Shown here piece by piece: positions 1,340-26,799 of a stretch of DNA of 26,799 nt. How positions within the stretch are numbered: the first letter of the stretch is position 1; the number at the start of each line of letters is the position of its first letter. This DNA comes from Amoeboradix gromovi X-113. Its lineage: Eukaryota > Fungi > Sanchytriomycota. Location of the stretch: assembly GCA_018985225.1 (NCBI GenBank), contig JADGIF010000052.1:1-26799 (forward strand). The letters are read 5' to 3'. The position numbers and the translations under genes are program-made. The notes beneath the pieces were generated by a model. That model saw nothing but the letters and a program-made list of their open reading frames with translations. It was not told the origin of the DNA and did no database searches.

Positions 1340-4300
1340 TCATTGCCCTGTACCTTTTTTTGCTACAGTTTCTGGGTTAATCTGAACTCTTTGCGTCTCA
1401 TTGGTAAGATAACTGATATCGTCCCACTAAATTAATAAATAACTACTGGATGTCGATACAATCCCTGCTTCAATCTCTTCTGATCCAAATAATGTCCAGT
1501 GAATCCAATTGTTCTACCCAATACGAATAACCCATTTAATGTCCCAATTTTGATGTATTCTTCAGCTTCTTCCTTGCTAAAGCACCCTGAATGTCTTAAC
1601 AAATCGACGAACAGTACTCCAATCGCACCATCAACGTTTAAAATCAAGTTTTCCTTTTTTAAAGTCGTAATCTCCTCAACTTGTAGAGCATAGTCTAAAA
1701 TTGGAGTTTGGGGGAAATGTGATTTTGCGTAATTCACAACTAGCTCGACTCGCTTGTCTGGGTTTGTCTTACTCTTAATCAAATGGCCAATTCCTAAAAT
1801 TAGCCTGTTCTCCCTTCTCATGTTGTCCACAAACTCACGTGGCGTTTTGCCTGCATCATAATTTTGGCTGAATATCTGAGCAGCTCCATCCAGTGCACCT
1901 CCAAACTTGTCCCCAATAGTTAGCATTCCGCTCACTATAGACGAAATCAAATCTTTTCCTGCCCTTGCTGTAACTATTGTATTGTGCGCTCCACTGACCG
2001 CTGGACCATGATCCGCTGTCAATATTAAAACCATTTCAATGAATTTGCATGCGTATTCTGGCAGTTTACGTTTGAACCAGAGCAAAGAGATAACTCCACC
2101 AATTCCCAGATTCTGGTTAAATATCTCACTGATGGGAACGCCCGCATACAGCAATTCCTCTCCTCTATCATCCGTTATAGTGCTTGTAAAGTTAGCCGGT
2201 TTTCTAATTAGCCCCAAAGAGACGGCCCATGCATAGTCGACAGGAATCTTTGGTATTGCTGGTTCTTTTTCCACAACAATGTCTCTACTCTCTACCAACT
2301 TCAAATAAACAGCATGAAGCATTTCCGGCAACTCTTCAAATGTGTTTGGTACGTTTATATTTGCTTCCTTCATTGCCTTGTTTTTAGCCATCGCTGTCTC
2401 CCTAGAACTGTTGGCGAATGCGCCTGCATGTCCAAATTGTACATTAGTTGTGAACAAATCAGCACATGTACCTATACACCAAGCAACAATTGGTGTAGTG
2501 ATAGTTTTGCTCTTTACTGCCTCAATCACGGCATATTCTTCACTTCCACCTACTTCACCTAGCAGAACAATTAGTTTAACATGCGGGTCATTGTCAAATC
2601 TAATTACGTGGTCAATAAATGTACTATTTGGGTATTTATCCCCTCCGATAGCTACACCTTCATATACTCCGTTTGTGCATCTGCTAATCATATTATTTAG
2701 TTCGTTGCTCATTCCGCCACTCTTACTTATGTAGCCTACACTTCCTGGTCTGTACAGCTTACTATCGACAATATTATCCATCATTCCACCCGTATTTCCA
2801 ATTTTAAAACAGCCAGCTTTGACACCACCAACAGTGGCAGGTCCTATAATAAGCACACCTTGCTGCTTCGCTTTATGCAGCAGCACTCTTGCACGCTGCT
2901 CTGGCACTCCTTCTGCTATAATACAGATAGTTTTAATTTGTGGAAAGTTTAGCATTTCCAAAGTGCTTGAATAAACAGATCTGCAGCTAGTGAAGTTAAC
3001 AACAACCTCTACATTTGGATGGTTGTTTATTGCCTTTAACAAAGAATCGTAAACGTTAATCAATATTTCACTGGTACCCCAGTAATATTTCATCTTTGAG
3101 TCACCTCCAAACGGATAAATAATGGCTGCAACAGAGGGTGAAGATCTTTTACATATATAGTCGAAATCCAACATTCCTTGAACTGCTTTAGGCTGCATTC
3201 CCCATATAAAAGATTGTGTTTGACTTGTAAAGGTTGGTTCAAATGACGCATTTGGAAACTTAGTAGGCGAAGTAGTAGACACTCTGTTTGACTCTGTGGT
3301 TACTTTAGATCCGGACATGTTATTAGAACCAGCTGCTCCACTAGTTGCTGTGCTAGTTGCTGTGTTAGATGGAGTTTCTCCCCATTCTAATCCAGGCTTA
3401 TTAAACAGAGCCATTGGAACTATACCAGTCACATGTGTCTCAGGACCATAAACATGCATATCCAATTTCAAAGAGATACCCACAGCCTTGATTTCTTCTA
3501 ATCCTTGCTGGTAGTTAGGGCCAGCTCTGCGTATATAAATACGAGTATTATGCTGCTGTAATTTAACAGCGTACTCATGTAGTGCTTTAATTATTCCCTT
3601 GAAAGTTGAAGCAACATTTGTAAAATTGGCAATTCCACCTCCAATTAATAAAATTTTTTGTTTAGTCATATCGTTACGAGTCATTAAGTCCATCACAGTT
3701 TTGGCGTAAAGATATGTTTGTTCCGTAGAGGGTGCACCACTGTATTCACCATAATTAGCTAGCTCTTCGCTAAAGCCATGATTGCAAATCGCATCAGCAT
3801 AAGCCACACTTGCACCACCACCGGCAACTAATGTCCAAACTGTACCAAATGGGTTAAGTATTGTAAGCTTTAATGAAGCGCCTGTTTTGGCATCTAGTTC
3901 GCTAATAAATATTTCTTCAGGTGACTGAACTCGACCAAACGGTGGGGGATAACTTAAAGGACTAGAAAGTGCCTTCAAATACTTGTCGTGACATTCAAAA
4001 TCAGCAGTTTGATCAATAATAGCTGCTAGATCCATCATAGAGATAGTAAACGGCTTGTTGTTTATCAAACCGGCAGATTGGGTAATTGCGGTTAAAAGTG
4101 GCGAGTTTGAAATTTCACTAGATTCTAACAAAACCAATGGGTTGATTTCCAGATAAGTGAAATGCAAGTCAACATAAACAGCGACCAGACGCATAATAAA
4201 TTCAATCAAAACAGCATGATGATTTTCAGGCACTTTCGTTAACAAAGACTTGACAAGTGACTCCGTGCATCGTTCTAAAGCTGGAATCAATACTTGCTCA

Positions 4301-4773
4301 GACTTAACATCTACATCGCCAATATCAACACCACCTAAATGGTAAAAATAGATGATGTCACCCTGTCTCTGACTAGTTATGCAGATGTAATACTCTAACT
4401 TGTGTGGGATAAAAGGCTCCACAATAAAGTGAGTAAGTTGCCCGGAGACCTTGTCAAATGCAACAGAACTGTGCTGATTAATCCACTCCAAGCACTCTGA
4501 GTAAGATTTGTTAAGGCCTATCAGACCTAGTTTTCCGCGGCGCTTGATGAGCATATCTGGTTTGACCACATATTTCAAAGATTCAGAAGGCGCTTGAGGA
4601 TGGGGTTTGTTGGTGTATTGGCACATGTTGCCGGCAAGAAAGTTGAACGAGACGCTGTTTTTGTCCTCTTCATGAGTTTTTTTGAAGTCATTGTTTAGAA
4701 GGAGATGACTGCGGTGCAAATGATGTTGGATAATCAATTTACCATCAAATTCACGAATGGGTTTGGCACTCAT
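1340..4773 (-). CDS. ACL1: ATP-citrate lyase, single-chain (fused) form, ~1137 aa; exons 4773-1447 and 1426-1340
   Basis: Begins MSAKPIREFDGK; contains KPDMLIKRRGK, GGGIANFT, phospho-His QFGHAG and ADHGPAVSGA motifs. Removing a 20-nt intron restores the conserved C-terminal YRHP|WDDISY. Confidence 0.96.
1427..1446 (-). other. 20-nt spliceosomal intron (ACL)
   Basis: GTAGTTATTTATTAATTTAG; splicing joins RHP to WDDISY. Confidence 0.93.
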
Positions 4774-4957
4774 TGCTGTATTAAGGAGGAGGGGGTAAAA
4801 ATAGATTCTTTTCATGCGAACATGTGGGACAGGATCTATGGATTATTAAACTAAATGGAAGAGACTGCGTGAAATTACTCTAGCACTGCACATCGTGTGC
4901 CGTGGGGAAGGGCTATAGCGTGAATTCACACTTCTTTATTTTATTATATACATCAAT

Positions 4958-5243
4958 ATATCCCGTTTATTTTGGCTAGTTGCATCTTTGAATATGAAAA
5001 AGTATTGGTATGATATTCATGAAATAATTACAACGGAAACGCAAGTGTTCCTGAGTATACTTCGTTATAAAAGCAGGAAAAGTCATTTGCTGGGTATACG
5101 CCCCAAAGAATCCTTTCCGCGGGCATCTAGTAGCGCCTAACAGAAGGTTGTTCAAAGATATCTGACGGGCCGACACTTTTGAAATCATTGCTTGGTATAA
5201 AACCCGATCTATCAACCCAGAAAATGTCATGTATACTTGCTTC
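4958..5243 (+). pseudogene. Possible piggyBac-like transposase C-terminal remnant
   Basis: RLFWLVASLN...LSILRYK...HLLG...RYLTGRHF*...PRKCHV in one frame with stops; weak resemblance by eye. Confidence 0.3.
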
Positions 5244-5244
5244 T

Positions 5245-5740
5245 CGTTAAAAGTCCTGCATTCCGCAGAAAATCGACAATTTCCACAGAGAAACTAGCAG
5301 TGCCACATGCTCCGTTACAGTGCCTGCTCACGCTCTCACTACCTGAGGCGGGATTGAATGAGGATGCATATACTTGATGTATATGTTCCTTGCAGCCATA
5401 TGGTCTCTATCTATTTCCAAATGACAATTGGTACATGTTTATGTTTCTAAATTAGTTTTCTTTAGAGTACCATACCTTGTACATGTCTGACTAGTAAATG
5501 ATTCATTGCATTCGATCATCGTCTTTCCTCTTTGCTTACACTTGAACTTCAAGCGTTCCTTGTATAAATTATTCAGATATCACTGTCTAGGCATTGAAAG
5601 ACATCTAATTCTTCCATGTTTGGACCCGTTCCTCAGTGTTGATGAATTTATGCTGTACCTTTAGTTATTTGTTTAGAATTGATTTACCGTTTGCGAAAAA
5701 GAAAAATATCGAGTGTTAAGGTATTAGAAAAATCTGGAAA
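5245..5740 (-). pseudogene. Fanzor2 (IS607-TnpB-like) remnant plus candidate omega-RNA
   Basis: From 5564 down: YKERLKFKCKQRGKTMIECNESFTSQTCTRYG...*TCTNCHLEIDRDHMAARNIYIKY; limits approximate. Confidence 0.88.
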
Positions 5741-5849
5741 AGTCTTGAAATGATACAAAAATATATACAAATTCGCTATAAATGATTTATTCAAGAAAAC
5801 AATCGAGCTGTACTACTCATAAAAAACAACTTGGCAGCTAAGTGCCTTA

Positions 5850-8718: not shown

Positions 8719-8820
8719 GTAGTGTACATATAGACACTATCTGAAGTGCAGTCATGTGGCATTAAATTGAATGACTGTTCAGTCATGGAGGTCGATGGAA
8801 TTTCACTAAAGAAAACATGC

Positions 8821-9263
8821 GGGACATCAAACATAAAAACTGGACTAACTTTCTGTAACAACTTGGAACATTATTTCAGCTTTATTACTTTATGGATTTA
8901 AGAGACGAGTTGGCGAGTATAAAAGGAAAATAAATATTCTGTACAGCTATTCTCTTACTCTTTCATCCAATCTTTATTTCAAATAAAATATCACTATTAT
9001 AGATAAGAGTAATGATGTCAGTATAACATTAAATGACACTAGAAAAGAATAACGTCTAAGAAAATGCACCTTTTGCTTAGATGCTCAAAGACCTCGTATA
9101 TTTGAACGAGATGCAGGGTCTTCTACTATTATTTTGAAGAGGGGATTGATAGTAATGAAAGAAAATTGGTATAATAGAAGAAGATCTTTTATTAATGATA
9201 GCATTTCCTCCGTATGGAGCACCTTTAAAAACGAGTTAGTCTAGTTTTTATATTTGGTGTCCC
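8821..9263 (+). mobile_element. Complete non-autonomous TIR element ('ghost') of Fanzor1 family A, 443 bp
   Basis: 30-bp TIRs at 8821-8850 and 9234-9263 (27/30 match); ATGC duplicated at 8817-8820 and 9264-9267; internal frame 9053-9244 reads RLRKCTFC...FERD (zinc-ribbon half plus RuvC-III). Confidence 0.88.
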
Positions 9264-9267
9264 ATGC

Positions 9268-9983
9268 CTTTCTTTCAAATTTGAGACAAGTCCCAAGTCT
9301 AAACCCATTAATTACTATGAGGCACGCAATCATAAACTGACCCCATTCCATTAAATAGGGGTTTTGATTGATGCACATAATGGGTGTCCCAAAGGAATCG
9401 TTGCATAAAAGTTCATATCTTACCATAATGTTTCTTGTAGGTGCTACAATAACTTATTATAACTTGTTCTATTTTTATAGATGCATCCATCTCTCTTTCA
9501 GTTACAAGAGTATTTGTACACCGACGTTGTTGTTGAGCGTTAAGTGATATCATCTCTTTTAGTAAGGTGTGATGACATTCGTAACACAACTTTGAGGTTT
9601 CAAATTCTGGTGCTATAATCATTCTAGTTCTATCACATAAGAATGTATTAGGCGTTTAATTGGAACAGTGGATTCCCTTAACAATTACCATAACTACCAT
9701 CTCCAAATAAATGTTTCTTCTTCTTTCATGATTTTTCTTGACAAAGATTTATAATTCCACCGACTACTCTATCCATCAAGATGAAAAGATCTAGATGGAA
9801 CAAGGCTTTCTCCAAGGTTATTGAGATAGCTTGTTATCTATTTGGAGTATTCAAAGGACATGAATGCATATCAACAAACTTAAAGATATCAAATCTCTCA
9901 TCAATTGCTTCTTTGGTACGAAGATCTTTGACCGTTTTCAACTTCTTTTTGCGCTCATAAAGAATAGGAACATCATGATGCAT
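9268..9983 (-). pseudogene. Fanzor1 family B pseudogene plus candidate omega-RNA
   Basis: Frameshifted LFGDGSYG / TVPIKRLI / FLCDRTRMIIAPEFETSKLCYECH ... RRCTN ... REMDASIKI; long hairpin at 9393-9280 downstream of the stop. Confidence 0.8.
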
Positions 9984-10559: not shown

Positions 10560-10925
10560 AGGTATTGAAGTTATTTTTATATAAAGCTGATGAATCTTAT
10601 TGGATAAACCATTTATCGAGAATACATCTTTTTTGGTATACATACTCTTCTTTTCTAGATAGTCTAATGGGATAAAAACGCGATGTCCCCGCTATTTATT
10701 AATGACAAGTAGTTCTAAACCTGCGATCCCGAACATATAGGATCTAAAGAAATAACAACAGATACAGCATATCATCGACATTGTGAAACTGGTGTGGATA
10801 GAGATCATATTGCAGCAAGAAATAGATATCAAAAGTATATACCCTAATTCAATCCCGCCACAGGGTACTAAAAGCTCGAGAAACCACTGTAATGGAGAAA
10901 TTAATTTCTCTGAAATTGCGTCTTT
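10560..10925 (+). pseudogene. Fanzor2 remnant, third copy, plus candidate omega-RNA
   Basis: WYTYSSFLDSL...; HCETGVDRDHIAARN (10779-10823); downstream TTCAATCCCGCC...CACTGTAA shared with the 5245-5740 copy. Confidence 0.78.
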
Positions 10926-11725: not shown

Positions 11726-12085
11726 GGGACACCAAATGTAAAAACAAGACCAAGTCGTCTTTAAAGGAGGTGCTCCATAAGGAGGAAATACTATTATTAA
11801 TAAAAATCCTTCTTCTTTCACACCAATTCTTTTTCATTAATGCCATTCCTCTCTTTAAAATAAAACAAGATGACCCAATATCTCTTTCAAGTAAGGTCTT
11901 TGAGTATCTAAGCAAAGGTGCATTTTCTTAGACGATACTCTTTATCTGTTCCATTTCTTTTTCTTCTTACCACCTTTCGTATAACTTATTTTTTGTTTTC
12001 TCTTCTTCTTGTAATCATTGTTTCTAAGATTTTGATGGATGAAAAGCTTTTACACTAAAACAATTTACTTCAATATGATATCACC
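11726..12085 (-). pseudogene. Fanzor1 family A 3' remnant with right TIR
   Basis: EYRLRKCTF.../LERDIGSSCFILKRG; ends GGTGTCCC|ATAA; 5' limit approximate. Confidence 0.82.
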
Positions 12086-15436: not shown

Positions 15437-15615
15437 CTCAGAGACCTCGTATATTTGAAAGAGATAGCGTGTCATCTTGTTTATTTTAAAGAGGGGATTG
15501 ACATTAATGAAAGAAAATTGGTTTGAAAGAAGGACTTTTATTAATAATAGTATTTCCTCCCTATGGAGTGCCTCCTTTAAAAACGACTTGGTCTAGTTTT
15601 TATATTTGGTGTCCC
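15437..15615 (+). pseudogene. Fanzor1 family A 3' remnant with right TIR
   Basis: RPRIFERD...KRGLTLMKENW...FKNDLV*; ends GGTGTCCC|ATGA. Confidence 0.82.
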
Positions 15616-16426: not shown

Positions 16427-19400
16427 CTAAATATTCTGCTGCTCATTATCAATCAACTCATATACATGTGTCTTGTTCATTTCTCGATTATATTCGCTCT
16501 CTAGCATCATCAAGATTTTTTTCTTTGACATCTCACCTTCTCTCATAAACATTCGTATGCTTTCTATGAGCCGGTCATCAGGTATTGCTCCAACCTCATC
16601 ACTCACGTACGGCTGCCTTTTTCTGACCATGGATGCTCTTGGTGATGGATTTGCTCGGAGCTGATCTCCCAACATGGGGCTCGCCATCATGGGACTGGAG
16701 TACATTGACATTCGTGGTGTATCTTGTCGCGGTGAGGCTGCAACAAATGGCGAGTACATAGTAGACATTCTTGGATTAGAATTAGTCACATTTTGCACAT
16801 CTGCAGGCGCATCTACAAACCAGCTAGCTTCTCTGCTATGTTTAAATAACTGCGGTCTTTGTTGTAACAGCTCATTTACCTCATTTGAATATTCCTGCCA
16901 TGTCTTGTGAGGTATCTGATTTATATCAAAAGTATCCACCTGCTTGCTAATTATTTGCTGTTTACCACCCTCTCCCAAGATCACTCGAGTAGTTCCCCAG
17001 CTAAAATCGTCAAAATGCCAAAAACTATACACTGGTAACATCAAATTGAATACCGGAATTGCGATTATGTAAATTAGCATCCACCCAATATGCTGGAAGT
17101 CTCTCTTAATTATGAATATTAAGGCCTGCAATCCATAGATGGCAGCTAACAAAATAAACGAAATGACAGGGAACAATCCTGGAGTTCCAAAGACATAGTC
17201 GTAAATTATCCTAGAAATCAAGTACATCAAATAAACAACACCTATAGGTCCTACAACAGTACTTATCAAATCAATAAATACGATAAAGCGCATGCTAAAA
17301 CAGCAAAAACCGCATAAACTATCAATCCAAATCAATTCTGCCAAATTATGGACTGTGCTGTTAATCCACCTACGTCTCTGGGATTTTAATATGGACCATT
17401 TATCAGGAGCATTAGTTAGGCACTGGCTATTACTAACAAATACCATTTTACTATATGGAAAATACTTCAGCATAAGCTACGTTAGTCTCAAATACTGTTG
17501 TTAGGTATCTATCCTCTCCCAAAGATAGCAAATTCTTTTTATGAAGTGTGTCAACCTGATTATTTCCATAATCCTCGATAATCTGATTGTTAACTAATAA
17601 CGGCTTACCTCCCGTACTAGATCCAGCAGCAATAACTGGGCTTCGAATTCTGTACATGCAGAAACAGCCAGGAAGACAAGTTACGCTTCCAAACATGCTT
17701 TCAAATGCTTTGCTTAAGTGATGACTAATGTAGTACTCATAAACCTGAATCATCGTAATAACGGATTGATTTTCGTTGCTGATTCTTGTTTCGCCACAGC
17801 ATCCCATAACTGATGCGTCAAAGTTCATTCTGGCGACTAATGGAGTTAGCGAGTCCTTAAGTATCTCAGTATCTGCGTCTACCATCAGTACTAGTTCATA
17901 AAGATTCGGATCAACACCGATAGTGTTCTGAATGTTGTGATATATCTCTAACTCTAATGGACTCATCGGCGTCTTGTAAATAACCTTATTTAGAAACCTC
18001 ATCAAAATCATTTGAGAGTCCCTTTTACCTCTGTTTCCAGGCTTTATACGTTCATTTAGTCTACCGCACTTAACCACAACTATGAAAGGTACAAGGTGGC
18101 CTTTTACTCCGTACAAACCGCTGAATACTTTGCCCATGTTATGTTGCTTACTGCCTTCCCCTATACTTACGAAACTTAACGGTTCAGTAGCTGCATCCAC
18201 ATCTGTACTTACTCCCAATATGTCTAATACTATTTGTGGTGTAGTTCTATCGTTTCCACTTCCCATTACTAAGCCGTCGCAAATCAAGAATAGTAATTTG
18301 TGTTGATCGCTGTATTTACAATTAGCACAGCTATCAATAGTTCTTCTTATGCTTTCTTCACCTTCGCTATAACAAGGAATTTGGATAATTGTGTATTTGT
18401 GTATTTCTTCAGGATTACTAGTCAACGCACTTCGTAAAGCAGCCAAAAACTTGATACCGATAATTAGTACTAGAAGTACAGAGGTTGTGAGCAGCAATAC
18501 ATTGCTCATAACACAAGGAATGCTCAATCTATCGTCTCTAACACCTACATAAAACAGATTATTAAAACACTGTTTGATGTTATTCTCATTTGCGTTCCAT
18601 TTCTGCATAAAATTGGAGTTATCGCTAAGGTCGGTACCAAAAGACTTCTGCAAATACTGAGTAACATCGCTACTAAAGAACTTGTAGTTTGGGTCAGTTG
18701 ATTTGTAGTTCCAAAAAGTCAAATCGTATACTTTTTTACTTATTATAACCATTTTGCGTGGTTCAGTGGCGTCCTTGAGGCTATTCACATACTGAGGTGC
18801 CCATGCTAGCTCTTTAACCCAGCGTTGTTTAGTTATAAAATTGTTAATAAAGGCACTTCCAAGAGCAGGGTTAGTAAGCCATCTCTTATGATGTTCAACA
18901 AATTTGGTAGCGTTCGTATCTGCGTACCGCGGTGGAGGTTCTAGAAACACAGCTTTATCCGTAGGTACGTTACAATATAGATTTGCTGGTCTAAACTGAA
19001 CTAGAGCAGAACTAACGTCCTTACCACCATACATTATCTTCATCCCTTTTGTGGTCTGAGAATGAACATAGTTCATATCATATATATCATTCAAGCTGTA
19101 TACCTTTCCATATGCGCTAACAATTTCATTGTTCAAAGTTAGCTCAAAGGGTGAATAGATATTTTGGAGAGGACAGATAAGTGGACCAAGGCCTACGATA
19201 AAAAAAAGGACTATCAGACTCATTAATAGTATAATCAAGCACAGCGCCACCTTTTCTCTCCAAGCTAACTGAACATCTCCTCTCTTCATTCTACCACAAA
19301 TTCGAATACAAAAGTCAGGAATAAAGAAAGTTAGCCCGTACACACAGCACAACCACCTTTTTCTTATCGTGGTTAACGGAACCTCTTCAATTTTTTCCTG

Positions 19401-21572
19401 ATCCTTGTTCAATGGAATGTTTACAATTGTATCAGCGATACTGGCATCGTCCTCATCCACTACACTTAATGCCACACTGCTCATATCACTCGTACTTATT
19501 TCGCTTTGATCATCACCATTCTGAGAATTGTTTTGCGAGTTGTTGATAGAAATGTTGTCGTTTGCTGCTGTGGTATTTAAGTGCTGCTGCAACCTCAATT
19601 TGCTCTCCAATTGCACAAATATCTTGTTTCCTATCATCACTTGTCGCTGTCCAAGATATAAATCAGAATTGTTTAAATGATTTGTAGTCTTGTACAATTC
19701 AATTACATCGCCATTTGCTGTGTTTCCATTATCAACGTTCAAAACACTACTATATTTTAATAAAAAGTCCGAAAATGTCATACTAGCTACATAGTCGCCC
19801 TTAAAATCCAGCAACTCTTTGTACAAATCATATATCTTATAATGTTTCAAATAAGTCCCGTTGATTTTATTGTTCGACTTTGGCACAACATAGACTACGC
19901 TAACCATTGTTTCCTGAACAATCTCTACCAGTTTGGAATAGGCTTGTAAGTAGTGAGTCCCTTTGCAATGCCTCTTTTTGTTTCCTTTGATTGGAACAAG
20001 AATATTGCATTGCTTCATTGCTAGATTTCTTATGCTTTTAGACGTGAATATCTTGTAAAGCACAGCATTTTCGGATTGAGGATACTCTGCACTACCTGCC
20101 ATCAGCACTACCAAGTCGTTGCTCAAGTACTCTTGATTTTGATGAGTTAGTAATTTGCCTTCATAAAACACAGTGCCATTAAAATGGTCAATTCCAAAGT
20201 TTGTGGAACTTCTACCTGTAGATAACAACTCAGATCCTTGGAATTCTTTTCTAATTTGTTGTAACAATGTAGCATAATCCTTATGAGTATTTATGAGCGT
20301 TAAAACACTATTTTTACTAAACAATAAATCATTTGTATTAGAATATTTGTATTGAACATCATTTTTTGGAAGTCCTTCAATTCTAAAATGAGTAGTGTTT
20401 AAGATCTGCTTAATGCAGGTTTCATGAAAATGTTGATAAACGGAATTGTTGATAAAATCCACTAGCTCATTCTCTTTTTCGATATAAATAGGCTTCAGGT
20501 CCACAAATAGAATGGTATTGGCATACTCAGAAGCAGCAATTCTTTTATTAACATGCTCAATGAACCAAGCATAAACCATGGCATAAAGCTGGCTAGCTAG
20601 CAAGTCTGTCTGCTGTTTAGCCTCGTCTTTATTAAGTAGCGCAGTAAAATACTCTCCATCCGTTATAGTAGTTTTAATAGTTAAACTAGCTTCCAAAGCA
20701 CTGGGATCAACACTAAACAGCAAAGCAACAATGTCTCGTACTTCTGTATTTTGTATCTTGCAAGGCTCATTTAATTGACTAGTATTCGAAAACTGAATAT
20801 TACCAAGATGAAGGATACCAGCGAGAATGCTATAAATGTGCAGTTTGGATTTTGAACTTAAATTAAGCAAACTAAGTCCGTTATCCAGTAGTCGAAAGTT
20901 ATCGCCATCTTTATGTGATATGGAAGTACTAAATTGACTCAAATAGCTGTACTGGTTAGGCTCGCCTAAATGTAAAGTAGATTTGATTTCTGAAGTACTT
21001 TGAAGTAGAGCATAGAACACATCAAAGTTTCGTTGATTGGACCCTTTGGAAACGACTCGATTGTATTCAAATAATGTACTAGTAAGTCTATAACCATTAA
21101 GGTGGCCTCTCTCATTAATTTGGGCCTGAACAATAATACCACACCGTTGGCTGGATTGGTCGTTGATCAAACAACTAGTGAACAGCTCATGGATGTTCAA
21201 AGCTGTTACCACCTTTGCGCAGTACTTTGTGTCTCTTTTTCCACCCATAACTTTTCCTAAATGAGATATCATATGATCTCTTATCTTCCCACCATTACCA
21301 AAATAAGCAATTGTTTGGTCTTTTGCCAACCTCCTTAGCCTAAAGTAAGTGTTATTGATTAGCTGAAGCGGGTTTGCATCATAGTTCCATTTATCCAAAC
21401 TGTCTTTGTAAGCTTCAACATATTCTTCATTCTCCAAATTTAATTGTGATTGAGCTGCAATCAATACCTGAGAACCTATTTTAACATACTTGTTGTTCAA
21501 TAAACGCGCCCCTATCTCTTCAGTTACAGAGTCTTTACTAGGATCTCTTAAATTTAAAAGATCAGAATCCAT
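16427..21572 (-). CDS. Division II (class V/VII-type) chitin synthase with degenerate myosin motor-like domain, ~1708 aa; exons 21572-17496 and 17476-16427
   Basis: Myosin-like N-terminus (QRNFDVFY, GILHLGNIQF, FGIDHFNGTVFY), AWREKVALC, GNRGKRDSQ, DADT, CLPGCF, LGEDRYLTT|LMLK, QRRRW, SWG. Confidence 0.95.
17477..17495 (-). other. 19-nt intron (chitin synthase)
   Basis: GTATTTGAGACTAACGTAG with CTAAC branch motif; restores EDRYLTTLMLK. Confidence 0.93.
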
Positions 21573-22651: not shown

Positions 22652-23030
22652 GACTAATTCTGACAAAATATCCTACTTTCCAAGTGGGAGAGACATTTAG
22701 AAACCACACCAGATCACCCATTATCATTAATTCAGCATGCTCAAAACCAAAAGAAACAAAAAAGACAAAATGATACATTGCAATAGAGCAAATAAAGATG
22801 ATAATGAAGTACTAGAAAGAGCACTACAAACATTGAGACAGAATATGAAAATGGTTATCGGTTGAGGCATTGCAACATATGCTTAGGTGCTAATCAGCCA
22901 AGCTGTTTTGAAAGAAATATTTCCAGTGCATTTTTATGTTGAAAAAGGCTTGATTGCATACTATGCAACTGACACATCTTTCCAGGAAATACTTAGATTT
23001 AGAGTTGGGGCATTTTCTGAAATTGGGTCC
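22600..23030 (+). pseudogene. Divergent family-A-related Fanzor1 remnant
   Basis: YRLRHCNICLGANQPSCFERNISSAF at 22856-22933 aligns with YRLRKCTFCLDAQRPRIFERD; ends TTGGGTCC|ATAT; 5' limit approximate. Confidence 0.72.
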
Positions 23031-26042: not shown

Positions 26043-26799
26043 GGGACACACTCTGTAAAAACTAGACCAAGTTATTTTTAAAGAGACCCCATACGAAGAA
26101 AAGATTGTTTCTAATAAATCTATTCCTCTTTAAATTAAAACAAGAAGACCCAGTATCTCGTTCAAAGTAACAAGGTCTAAAAGCGTCTGAGCAAAAGGTG
26201 CATTTTCTTAGACGAACTTTTCTCTTTTATCATTTATTAACAGCTTCGTTTGTATCATATCGTTTGTCAATAAAAGACCTGCAAACACTACAATGCTTGG
26301 ATGTGTAATCTTCATTGACTAGAACAAAGTCCACTTTAGATTTACAAGGTCTTGCAAAGAAGTCTCGAATACTATGACAAGGACTACAATTATTCTTTTT
26401 AACGTTGGTCTTGAGCTTGCCATCAACCCAAAGTAACAGGGTCTTTTTACCTGGACCAGATTGTTTTTGAAGACTTTTTTACGCCAGGCTTTCAAGTCAT
26501 AATCTGCCATCATATGGTTTAGGTCTGTATTAAATATAGGCATGGGTTGCTCTTGAACAAGTTCACCTTTAAGCTGCTCCTCGGTTTACTAATTTTGAAA
26601 ACATCAAGTCTTGAGTAAACAAGCCGTGCAATCTAGTAAAATGGTCTTGAGATGGTTTAAAATCATTTGGTGGTTGTTGGTTTCTAAAACCCAATTCCAA
26701 AAGAGAAGAAATTGAAGCTCTATGATGAAGACGACGAAATGTATCTCTAATCCTAGTTTTTAGCGTGTTAGCTTCTTTTTAACAGTTAAAGGACCCTCT
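26043..26799 (-). pseudogene. Fanzor1 family A pseudogene, longest copy, continues off the window end
   Basis: One frame 26460-26062: LLLWVDGK...SPCHSIRDFF...VLVNEDYTSKHCSVC...(2 stops)...RLRKCTFC...FERDTGSS, i.e. RuvC-II Glu, two CxxC, RuvC-III Asp; ends GTGTCCC|ATGC. Confidence 0.9.

Follow-up and report, generated by a model that had tools for sequence, protein, structure and literature searches.

A 443-bp element at positions 8821–9263 of the window (the whole 26,799-nt stretch of DNA analysed here) is a ghost, that is, a Fanzor1-carrying terminal inverted repeat (TIR) transposon reduced to a non-autonomous, MITE-like deletion derivative. It retains both ends, is devoid of a functional ORF and has its right-end region in common with copies that encode protein. 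The host, Amoeboradix gromovi, is a sanchytrid, a tiny fungus that parasitizes algae. That the family is a transposon with a Fanzor1 gene is, taken by itself, almost certain. By comparison with described systems, it is a new Fanzor1 family, which would combine a Spu-1-like way of working with the target duplication of the Sola2–Fanzor elements of dictyostelids.

The first and last 30 bases of the element are complementary at 27 of 30 positions and the 4-mer ATGC is found on both sides (8817–8820 and 9264–9267), which reproduces the coordinates of a first-pass annotation (Table 1). As ATGC is rare in the family (1 of 42 left flanks), this match is probably a true target-site duplication. No empty paralogous site for the element was found in the genome, because its left flank is unique. 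The remnant of the Fanzor gene is an 81-codon frame (8999–9241), with an internal stop at 9050–9052 and a final TAG at 9242–9244. This TAG falls inside the right repeat (9234–9263), as had been reported. The presence of a Fanzor tail was also correctly reported, but the length then given, about 63 codons, is that of the portion past the internal stop.

Table 1. Features of the ghost element and of other copies of its family in the window
Feature	Positions	Strand	Remarks
Left-flank target motif	8812–8816	+	Ends in C at −5 (8816); candidate part of the TAM
Left copy of the 4-bp target-site duplication, ATGC	8817–8820	+	
Left terminal inverted repeat	8821–8850	+	27/30 to the right repeat; 22/30 to the L087 left end
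Non-coding left part	8851–8998	+	Common to family copies; small deletions relative to the 480-bp consensus
Last 81 codons of the Fanzor1 gene	8999–9244	+	Second zinc-finger CxxC and RuvC-III ERD
Candidate omega-RNA 3′ hairpin	9212–9263	+	Purine-rich strand pairs with right-repeat T-tract, plus outer stem
Right terminal inverted repeat	9234–9263	−	Contains the stop codon; 29/30 identical to the L087 right repeat
Right duplication copy (9264–9267) and candidate guide	9264–9283	+	By analogy with SpuFz1 (PMC10432273)
Left end of another copy	1–141	−	Runs off the contig start; missed in the first-pass annotation
Right-end-only copy, variant subfamily	11726–12000	−	Left end absent nearby
Right-end-only copy, variant subfamily	15437–15615	+	Left end absent nearby
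Sister-subfamily copy, 3′ 757 bp	26043–26799	−	Broken Fanzor remnant with RuvC-II; runs off the contig end

Three other right ends recognized earlier in the window, at 11726(−), 15615(+) and 26043(−), were all located. Their flanks, described as different at each site, are mostly so; however, because of the target preference, all four flanks in the window start with AT and two with ATGC. The copy at 26043 does read NEDYTSK-CxxC...CxxC-ERD, across two adjacent stops. It had been taken for the same element and it has the right end, but we assign it to a sister subfamily, whose copies measure about 985 bp and differ in the letters of their repeats.

The window also contains DNA of other origin. 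Three remnants, at 5238–5811(−), 365–669 and 10579–10903, belong to a second, unrelated family of IS607/Fanzor2 type; the first includes a PF07282 match of 60.6 bits at 5382–5561, and the genome holds at least 150 such remnants (560 candidates). A third repeat (9317–9470; about 25 copies) begins 54 bp past the ghost and matches the DNA where a Fanzor1-like open frame of 693 codons (C363:1502–2557) has its 3′ end. Judging from this sequence match, it is probably the right end of a different Fanzor family. A location of the ghost within the RNA hairpin of another family was not supported, as this repeat begins only near 9317. At 22811–22948(+), a weak match to a Fanzor C terminus (43%, E = 2e-5) is possibly an old remnant. 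Two ordinary fungal genes, both identified by eye and nearly intron-free, encode a fused ATP-citrate lyase of 1,127 aa (1432–4815(−)) and, in two frames, a myosin-like/chitin-synthase protein (16427–21572(−)).

The protein was identified using a longer relative. Contig C1157 (locus L054) begins inside an uninterrupted 436-codon frame that ends in the family right repeat and contains all three RuvC motifs (IGIDPG and NESYTSK-CSVC...CTFC...ERD). The RuvC-I aspartate lies in a DPG motif (IGIDPG in L054 and GVDPG in P0007, the product of an intact element presented below), a region deleted in the ghost. The RuvC-II glutamate and the [TS][TS]xx-C4 zinc finger, followed by RD, are complete in L054 and broken in the 26043 copy; the ghost keeps CTFC and ERD. 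The ghost remnant matches the L054 protein at 59% over 56 aa (E = 2e-21) and P0002 at 82% over 34 aa. P0002, an A. gromovi protein from EukProt, is 100% identical to contig C33 and ends early, before the ERD motif. Coding copies 92–95% like P0002 lie at contig edges, and at two of these loci (C33 and C363) the right repeat is exactly that of the family. In the assembly, the best frames of this family stop at contig edges and a full-length Fanzor gene was nowhere seen whole; whole genes may exist in the genome, unassembled.

Relatives of this protein are scarce: two large searches returned 4 and 16 proteins (the 16 at 50% clustering). Single-sequence searches of solved structures with the L054 protein and P0007 yielded no match, and a profile of the relatives alone succeeded, matching GtFz1 (E = 6.8e-16) and SpuFz1 (1.1e-4), with the three catalytic motifs in register; Cas12f/TnpB scored only 0.08 or worse. 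A low-confidence structural model (pLDDT 50) of P0003, a full-length homologue, aligns best to SpuFz1, PpFz1 and GtFz1 with Z-scores of 6.9–11.2 (9–11 for SpuFz1 and PpFz1), compared with 3.6 for the next, unrelated structure. Foldseek with the same model gave no match below E = 0.001, because the model is poor. As judged from the uninterrupted L054 relative, the profile matches and the alignment of the P0003 model, the family protein is nearer to characterized Fanzor1 proteins than to TnpB, Cas12f or Fanzor2, in agreement with its earlier naming as a Fanzor1. The comparison with RuvC and TnpB proteins, envisaged for the broken 26043 frame, was made with the L054 frame in its place and returned RuvC motifs and a Fanzor1 profile match. 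We rejected an IS607-type Fanzor2 for this family: repeats and a duplication are present, and PF07282 scores below the cut-off.

Elsewhere in the genome (G000), locus L070 (C542) contains an uninterrupted Fanzor2-type ORF at 1417–3126(−), with 569 aa from the first start and an open frame of 672 codons. A resolvase-like ORF of the sort typical of IS607 TnpA overlaps it at 2711–3169(−). Other Fanzor1 lineages have long open frames at C363:1502–2557 (693 codons), C1184:4715–5680 (748 codons) and C574:9137–9832 (273 codons). The C574 protein, P0009, is 51–53% like the virus-like P0003 and groups with it in the protein tree.

A scan of metagenomes for the repeat pattern revealed a complete element, L087, 2,071 bp in length, with repeats at 151 and 2221. 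It contains one intact ORF of 642 aa (P0007) and no transposase, and the stop codon again lies inside the right repeat. P0007 is 31% identical to the L054 protein; the right repeat, by comparison, matches that of the window at 29 of 30 positions and the left ends match at 22 of 30. Ends of the same element were found on several contigs of a related assembly with giant-virus genes, and these contigs encode a giant-virus major capsid protein, VLTF3, D5 primase and YqaJ. Closer relatives with like ends are present on one lake metagenome contig and in another run; further full-length homologues are located on gene-dense, virus-like contigs, where no repeats are visible. A search of the viral contig collection did not return the end pattern. 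In the protein tree, the fungal proteins and the closer metagenome relatives are joined firmly, and the support is too weak to give the direction of transfer.

The virus-like contigs bear additional structures. On L085, a giant-virus-like contig, ends of the Fanzor1 element occur together with a gene for a 557-aa Fanzor2/TnpB that looks intact (582–2252) and, at 373–435(−), with a tandem pair of left-end repeats 62 bp apart, the outer of which is nearly of the fungal type. On another virus-like metagenome contig, L090, a mini element of about 50 bp (2132–2182(−)) consists of scarcely more than two family repeats.

The first-pass annotation had proposed to collect copies genome-wide by their TIRs, and in the A. 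gromovi genome (published size 10.5 Mb; PMC8371127) the end pattern gives 1,576 matches with up to 2 mismatches. The reversed control gives 0, and the pattern is therefore not due to chance. We estimate about 790 elements, or one per 13 kb, which at 480 bp each amount to about 3.6% of the genome; summed unitig depth puts the element at about 1,000 times its flanks, a figure that is not a copy number. Statistics on flanks, duplications and divergence were derived from 38 of the ~790 copies, picked by similarity to the query. These 38 full copies yield a 480-bp consensus, with a median divergence of about 4.6%.

Private mutations are evenly spread over the element (0.011–0.016 per site) and do not spare the hairpin (0.016 per site, compared with 0.015 outside it), and the remnant frame is intact in only 9 of 35 copies. 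Thus, neither the private mutations nor the remnant frame in the 35 copies reveal purifying selection on the ghost frame, and most individual ghosts are now decaying neutrally. The copies are also mosaic. Haplotype blocks reassort inside the element, with linkage decaying within 10–30 bp and blocks broken within 17 bp. Two copies share right flanks that are 98% identical and have unrelated left flanks, and one copy is bordered by a different repeat family at each side. Two pairs of copies (L028:1940 and L074, on C729 and C941; L053 and L060, on C88 and C459) are joined at the right end to the same position of another repeat; left flanks are unrelated between L028 and L074. Such pairs could reflect flank swapping or hot-spot insertion.

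The target site was defined from the 38 full copies. Flanking 4-mers follow A-W-N-T, and a W-A-C consensus stands ahead of the 4-mer on the left. A C occupies position −5 in 36 of 38 left flanks, whereas 16 of 38 right flanks have the mirror G; discordant copies are distributed 20:0 (p = 2e-6). The motif therefore lies upstream of the left end only, a feature of ghost loci of the Spu-1 type, and the one-sided C at −5 is as expected of a TAM. In Spu-1, the one-sided CA motif before left ends belongs to the CATA TAM (PMC10432273), and for IS607 it has been proposed that sites bearing a TAM are selected (10.1101/2023.08.09.552727). By analogy, the TAM of this family would be approximately 5′-WAC-AWNT, or 5′-WAC if the guide takes in the 4-mer, and the candidate guide of the ghost would begin at +1 or +5.

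An exact 4-bp duplication flanks 13 of the 38 full copies, compared with 4.1 expected by shuffling (p = 1e-4). The duplication predicted for other full copies is thus present above the shuffled expectation, but the rest of the copies are mismatched. In 13 of 38 the duplication differs at two or more places, compared with about 2 predicted from 5% decay (p = 2e-8). We rejected age as the cause, as mismatch does not rise with age: exact duplications are found in 6 of the 8 most diverged copies versus 7 of the other 30.

Recombination among copies explains the broken duplications, the swapped flanks and the internal mosaicism alike. Mismatched duplications and swapped flanks could alternatively be assembly artefacts arising from the mis-threading of ~800 near-identical repeats. 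The genome was assembled with SPAdes from short reads after whole-genome amplification of single-sporangium DNA (PMC8371127), unitigs break within the element, and exact duplications tend to be in the most diverged copies, all of which would suit such artefacts. Homology-dependent recombination, however, likewise favours near-identical copies. Moreover, linkage decay over 10–30 bp and blocks broken inside 17 bp are below the usual assembly words, and the fine mosaicism must therefore be in the reads. Mis-assembly could produce flank swaps, hardly the fine mosaicism, and we regard it as a possible but doubtful source of the mismatched duplications and swapped flanks.

The family right end is predicted, from its sequence, to give rise to an omega-RNA. 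The last 52 bases of the element fold as a hairpin formed by a purine-rich strand and the repeat T-tract, under an outer stem. This terminal hairpin is common to right ends and is missing from left ends. Its topology was recovered in 8 of 9 right ends, drawn from several lineages, and in 0 of 6 control ends; the L054 fold is not that of minimum energy. Against shuffles of the 24 upstream bases that left the repeat unchanged, the nine right ends, which are not independent, have z-scores of −0.5 to −5.1 (five with p < 0.05, and weak in three lineages), compared with −0.04 to +2.4 for six control ends of related repeats. In the virus-borne lineage, the 5′ strand is of another sequence, yet 12 bases are paired, with five G-U pairs. 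Because this differing strand still pairs, using G-U pairs, the hairpin points to an RNA and not to a DNA repeat. RNAalifold applied to 16 right ends returned a single 4-bp stem with no two-sided changes; the alignment used omits a one-base shift that is required between the lineages. No strong structure in common emerged when 100–230 nt were folded. Among sequencing runs, the locus is contained in a single DNA run and in no RNA run.

The hairpin bears on whether the ghosts are plain MITEs, amplified by a transposase alone, in which the Fanzor tail was spared by a founder deletion and the ghost RNA is irrelevant. The one-sided C would then arise because the transposase acts on unequal ends and inserts the element in an oriented manner, and with the mirror G on the right in 42% of copies, part of the motif does resemble a palindromic preference of a transposase. 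Neutral decay across the element, with the remnant frame intact in 9 of 35 copies, and the absence of an intact gene from the assembly are what such an origin would leave. It accounts poorly for a hairpin that left ends lack and that persists, through G-U pairs and with a changed 5′ strand, between lineages with a protein identity of 31%. In addition, several deletion types retain the same 3′ part, and Spu ghost RNAs function with SpuFz1 (PMC10432273). We find a plain MITE origin unlikely.

We then consider the mobilizing enzyme. DUF7869, which we take to be a Sola-type transposase domain, is present at 28 loci over the cut-off in the genome, and of 29 DUF7869 loci only 2 (C488:8071 and C781:7292) have a related repeat in a fitting place. 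A Fanzor gene of this family is interrupted by some 4.2 kb of DNA that includes one DUF7869 gene and has at one end a related repeat, then AATT. At another DUF7869 locus, a sister-subfamily repeat is located 1.8 kb upstream in a fitting direction. The terminal repeats of the family start with GGG or GAG, and those of Sola2 start with GRG. Sola2–Fanzor elements have AWWT duplications (PMC3627910). On this circumstantial evidence, a Sola-type partner, either Sola1 or Sola2, is likely. That another DDE transposase uses these repeats instead appears rather improbable: no element with both family repeats around a transposase gene was seen, which leaves room for such an enzyme, but the 4-bp A-W-N-T duplication and the GRG termini are unlike the TA duplication of Tc1/mariner/IS630, and DUF7869 loci with related repeats are found at C488 and C781.

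We propose the following mechanism. The parent would be an element of about 2.1 kb with the Fanzor gene alone between the repeats, as shown for L087 and inferred for A. gromovi. A DDE transposase encoded elsewhere, probably of Sola type, would recognize the repeats and insert the element at W-A-C-A-W-N-T sites, making the 4-bp duplication. By analogy with SpuFz1, and given the hairpin, the right end would serve both as the ORF end and as the omega-RNA scaffold, with read-through into the flank providing the guide. After excision, Fanzor supplied in trans would recut the empty donor site at the TAM. Repair from a filled copy would then restore the element, favouring copies with the left C and driving copy number up, and repair from ectopic copies would generate mosaics and swapped flanks. 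For the whole chain (Sola-type transposase in trans, right-end omega-RNA guide, recutting and repair from filled copies), we estimate a probability of roughly 0.65.

The closest functional parallel is Spu-1/SpuFz1 of Spizellomyces punctatus (PMC10432273; PMC3627910), likewise a Fanzor-only element of about 2.1 kb with 30-nt repeats. Both systems have shorter, gene-less ghosts (550 nt in Spu and 480 nt in A. gromovi), a motif before the left end only, no transposase inside and an omega-RNA (predicted in A. gromovi) that takes in the right repeat. Spu-1, however, has a TA duplication and a CATA TAM, whereas this family has a 4-bp A-W-N-T duplication; the Spu-1 stop lies about 75 nt before the end and its ghosts are without an ORF, whereas here the stop is in the repeat and ~80 codons are kept. 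Spu-1 has 134 ghosts in 24 Mb, compared with ~790 in 10.5 Mb, and the likeness to the SpuFz1 protein is seen at profile level only (E = 1e-4).

The dictyostelid Sola2–Fanzor1 elements DFa-1 to DFa-3 and PPa-1, PPa-4 and PPa-5 (PMC3627910) likewise carry Fanzor1 between TIRs, with an AWWT 4-bp duplication and a G-R-G start (DFa-2 begins GAG). They are 10–15 kb in length, with 12–22-bp repeats, intron-rich Fanzors of more than 1,000 aa and a Sola2 transposase inside, whole or deleted, whereas this family has 30-bp repeats, an intron-free Fanzor of about 640 aa and no transposase inside. Of the solved structures, GtFz1 of Guillardia theta (PDB 9cer) gives the strongest profile match, which covers the RuvC and zinc-finger half. 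The GtFz1 locus is seemingly without inverted repeats (PMC10432273), its TAM is TTAAN and it has N at the position of this family's RuvC-III D. Finally, the unclassified viral Fanzor1 families HVav-1, SFav-1, PUgv-1 and kin (PMC3627910) likewise have inverted repeats, a 4-bp duplication and no transposase, and reside in large DNA viruses. Their repeats are 13 bp, their duplication is TTAN and their hosts are insect viruses; unlike them, this family shares its 30-bp right repeat between giant-virus contigs and the nucleus of a fungus.

Non-autonomous Fanzor elements and the overlap of RNA and repeat are already known (PMC10530073). In the literature searched, no paper pairs Fanzor with A. gromovi or its phylum. 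Within this literature, the earlier suggestion of an undescribed system appears to hold for the family itself, although systems of this kind have been described. What sets the family apart is that its stop codon lies within the repeat, that its copies are so numerous and mosaic, and that giant-virus DNA carries a nearly identical right end.

A broader scenario, which we consider a long shot, is that the ~800 ghosts form a working, self-shuffling guide library, with right flanks swapped through breaks at element ends, and that, in addition, the element shuttles between sanchytrids and their giant viruses and the near-invariant right end lets one host transposase move Fanzors only 31% alike.

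The family provides a Fanzor1 lineage with very few database relatives. It includes an intact member from nature, and both a TAM and a compact RNA end are predicted for it, which makes it ready for a standard assay. Hundreds of copies with a one-sided flank motif offer a good natural test of whether a Fanzor aids its transposon by recutting empty sites. The right repeat, identical at 29 of 30 positions between a fungal nucleus and giant-virus contigs, bears on the question of viruses carrying Fanzors between hosts. Finally, a family of mosaic copies that occupies about 3.6% of a reduced 10.5-Mb parasite genome may be among the main causes of rearrangement there.
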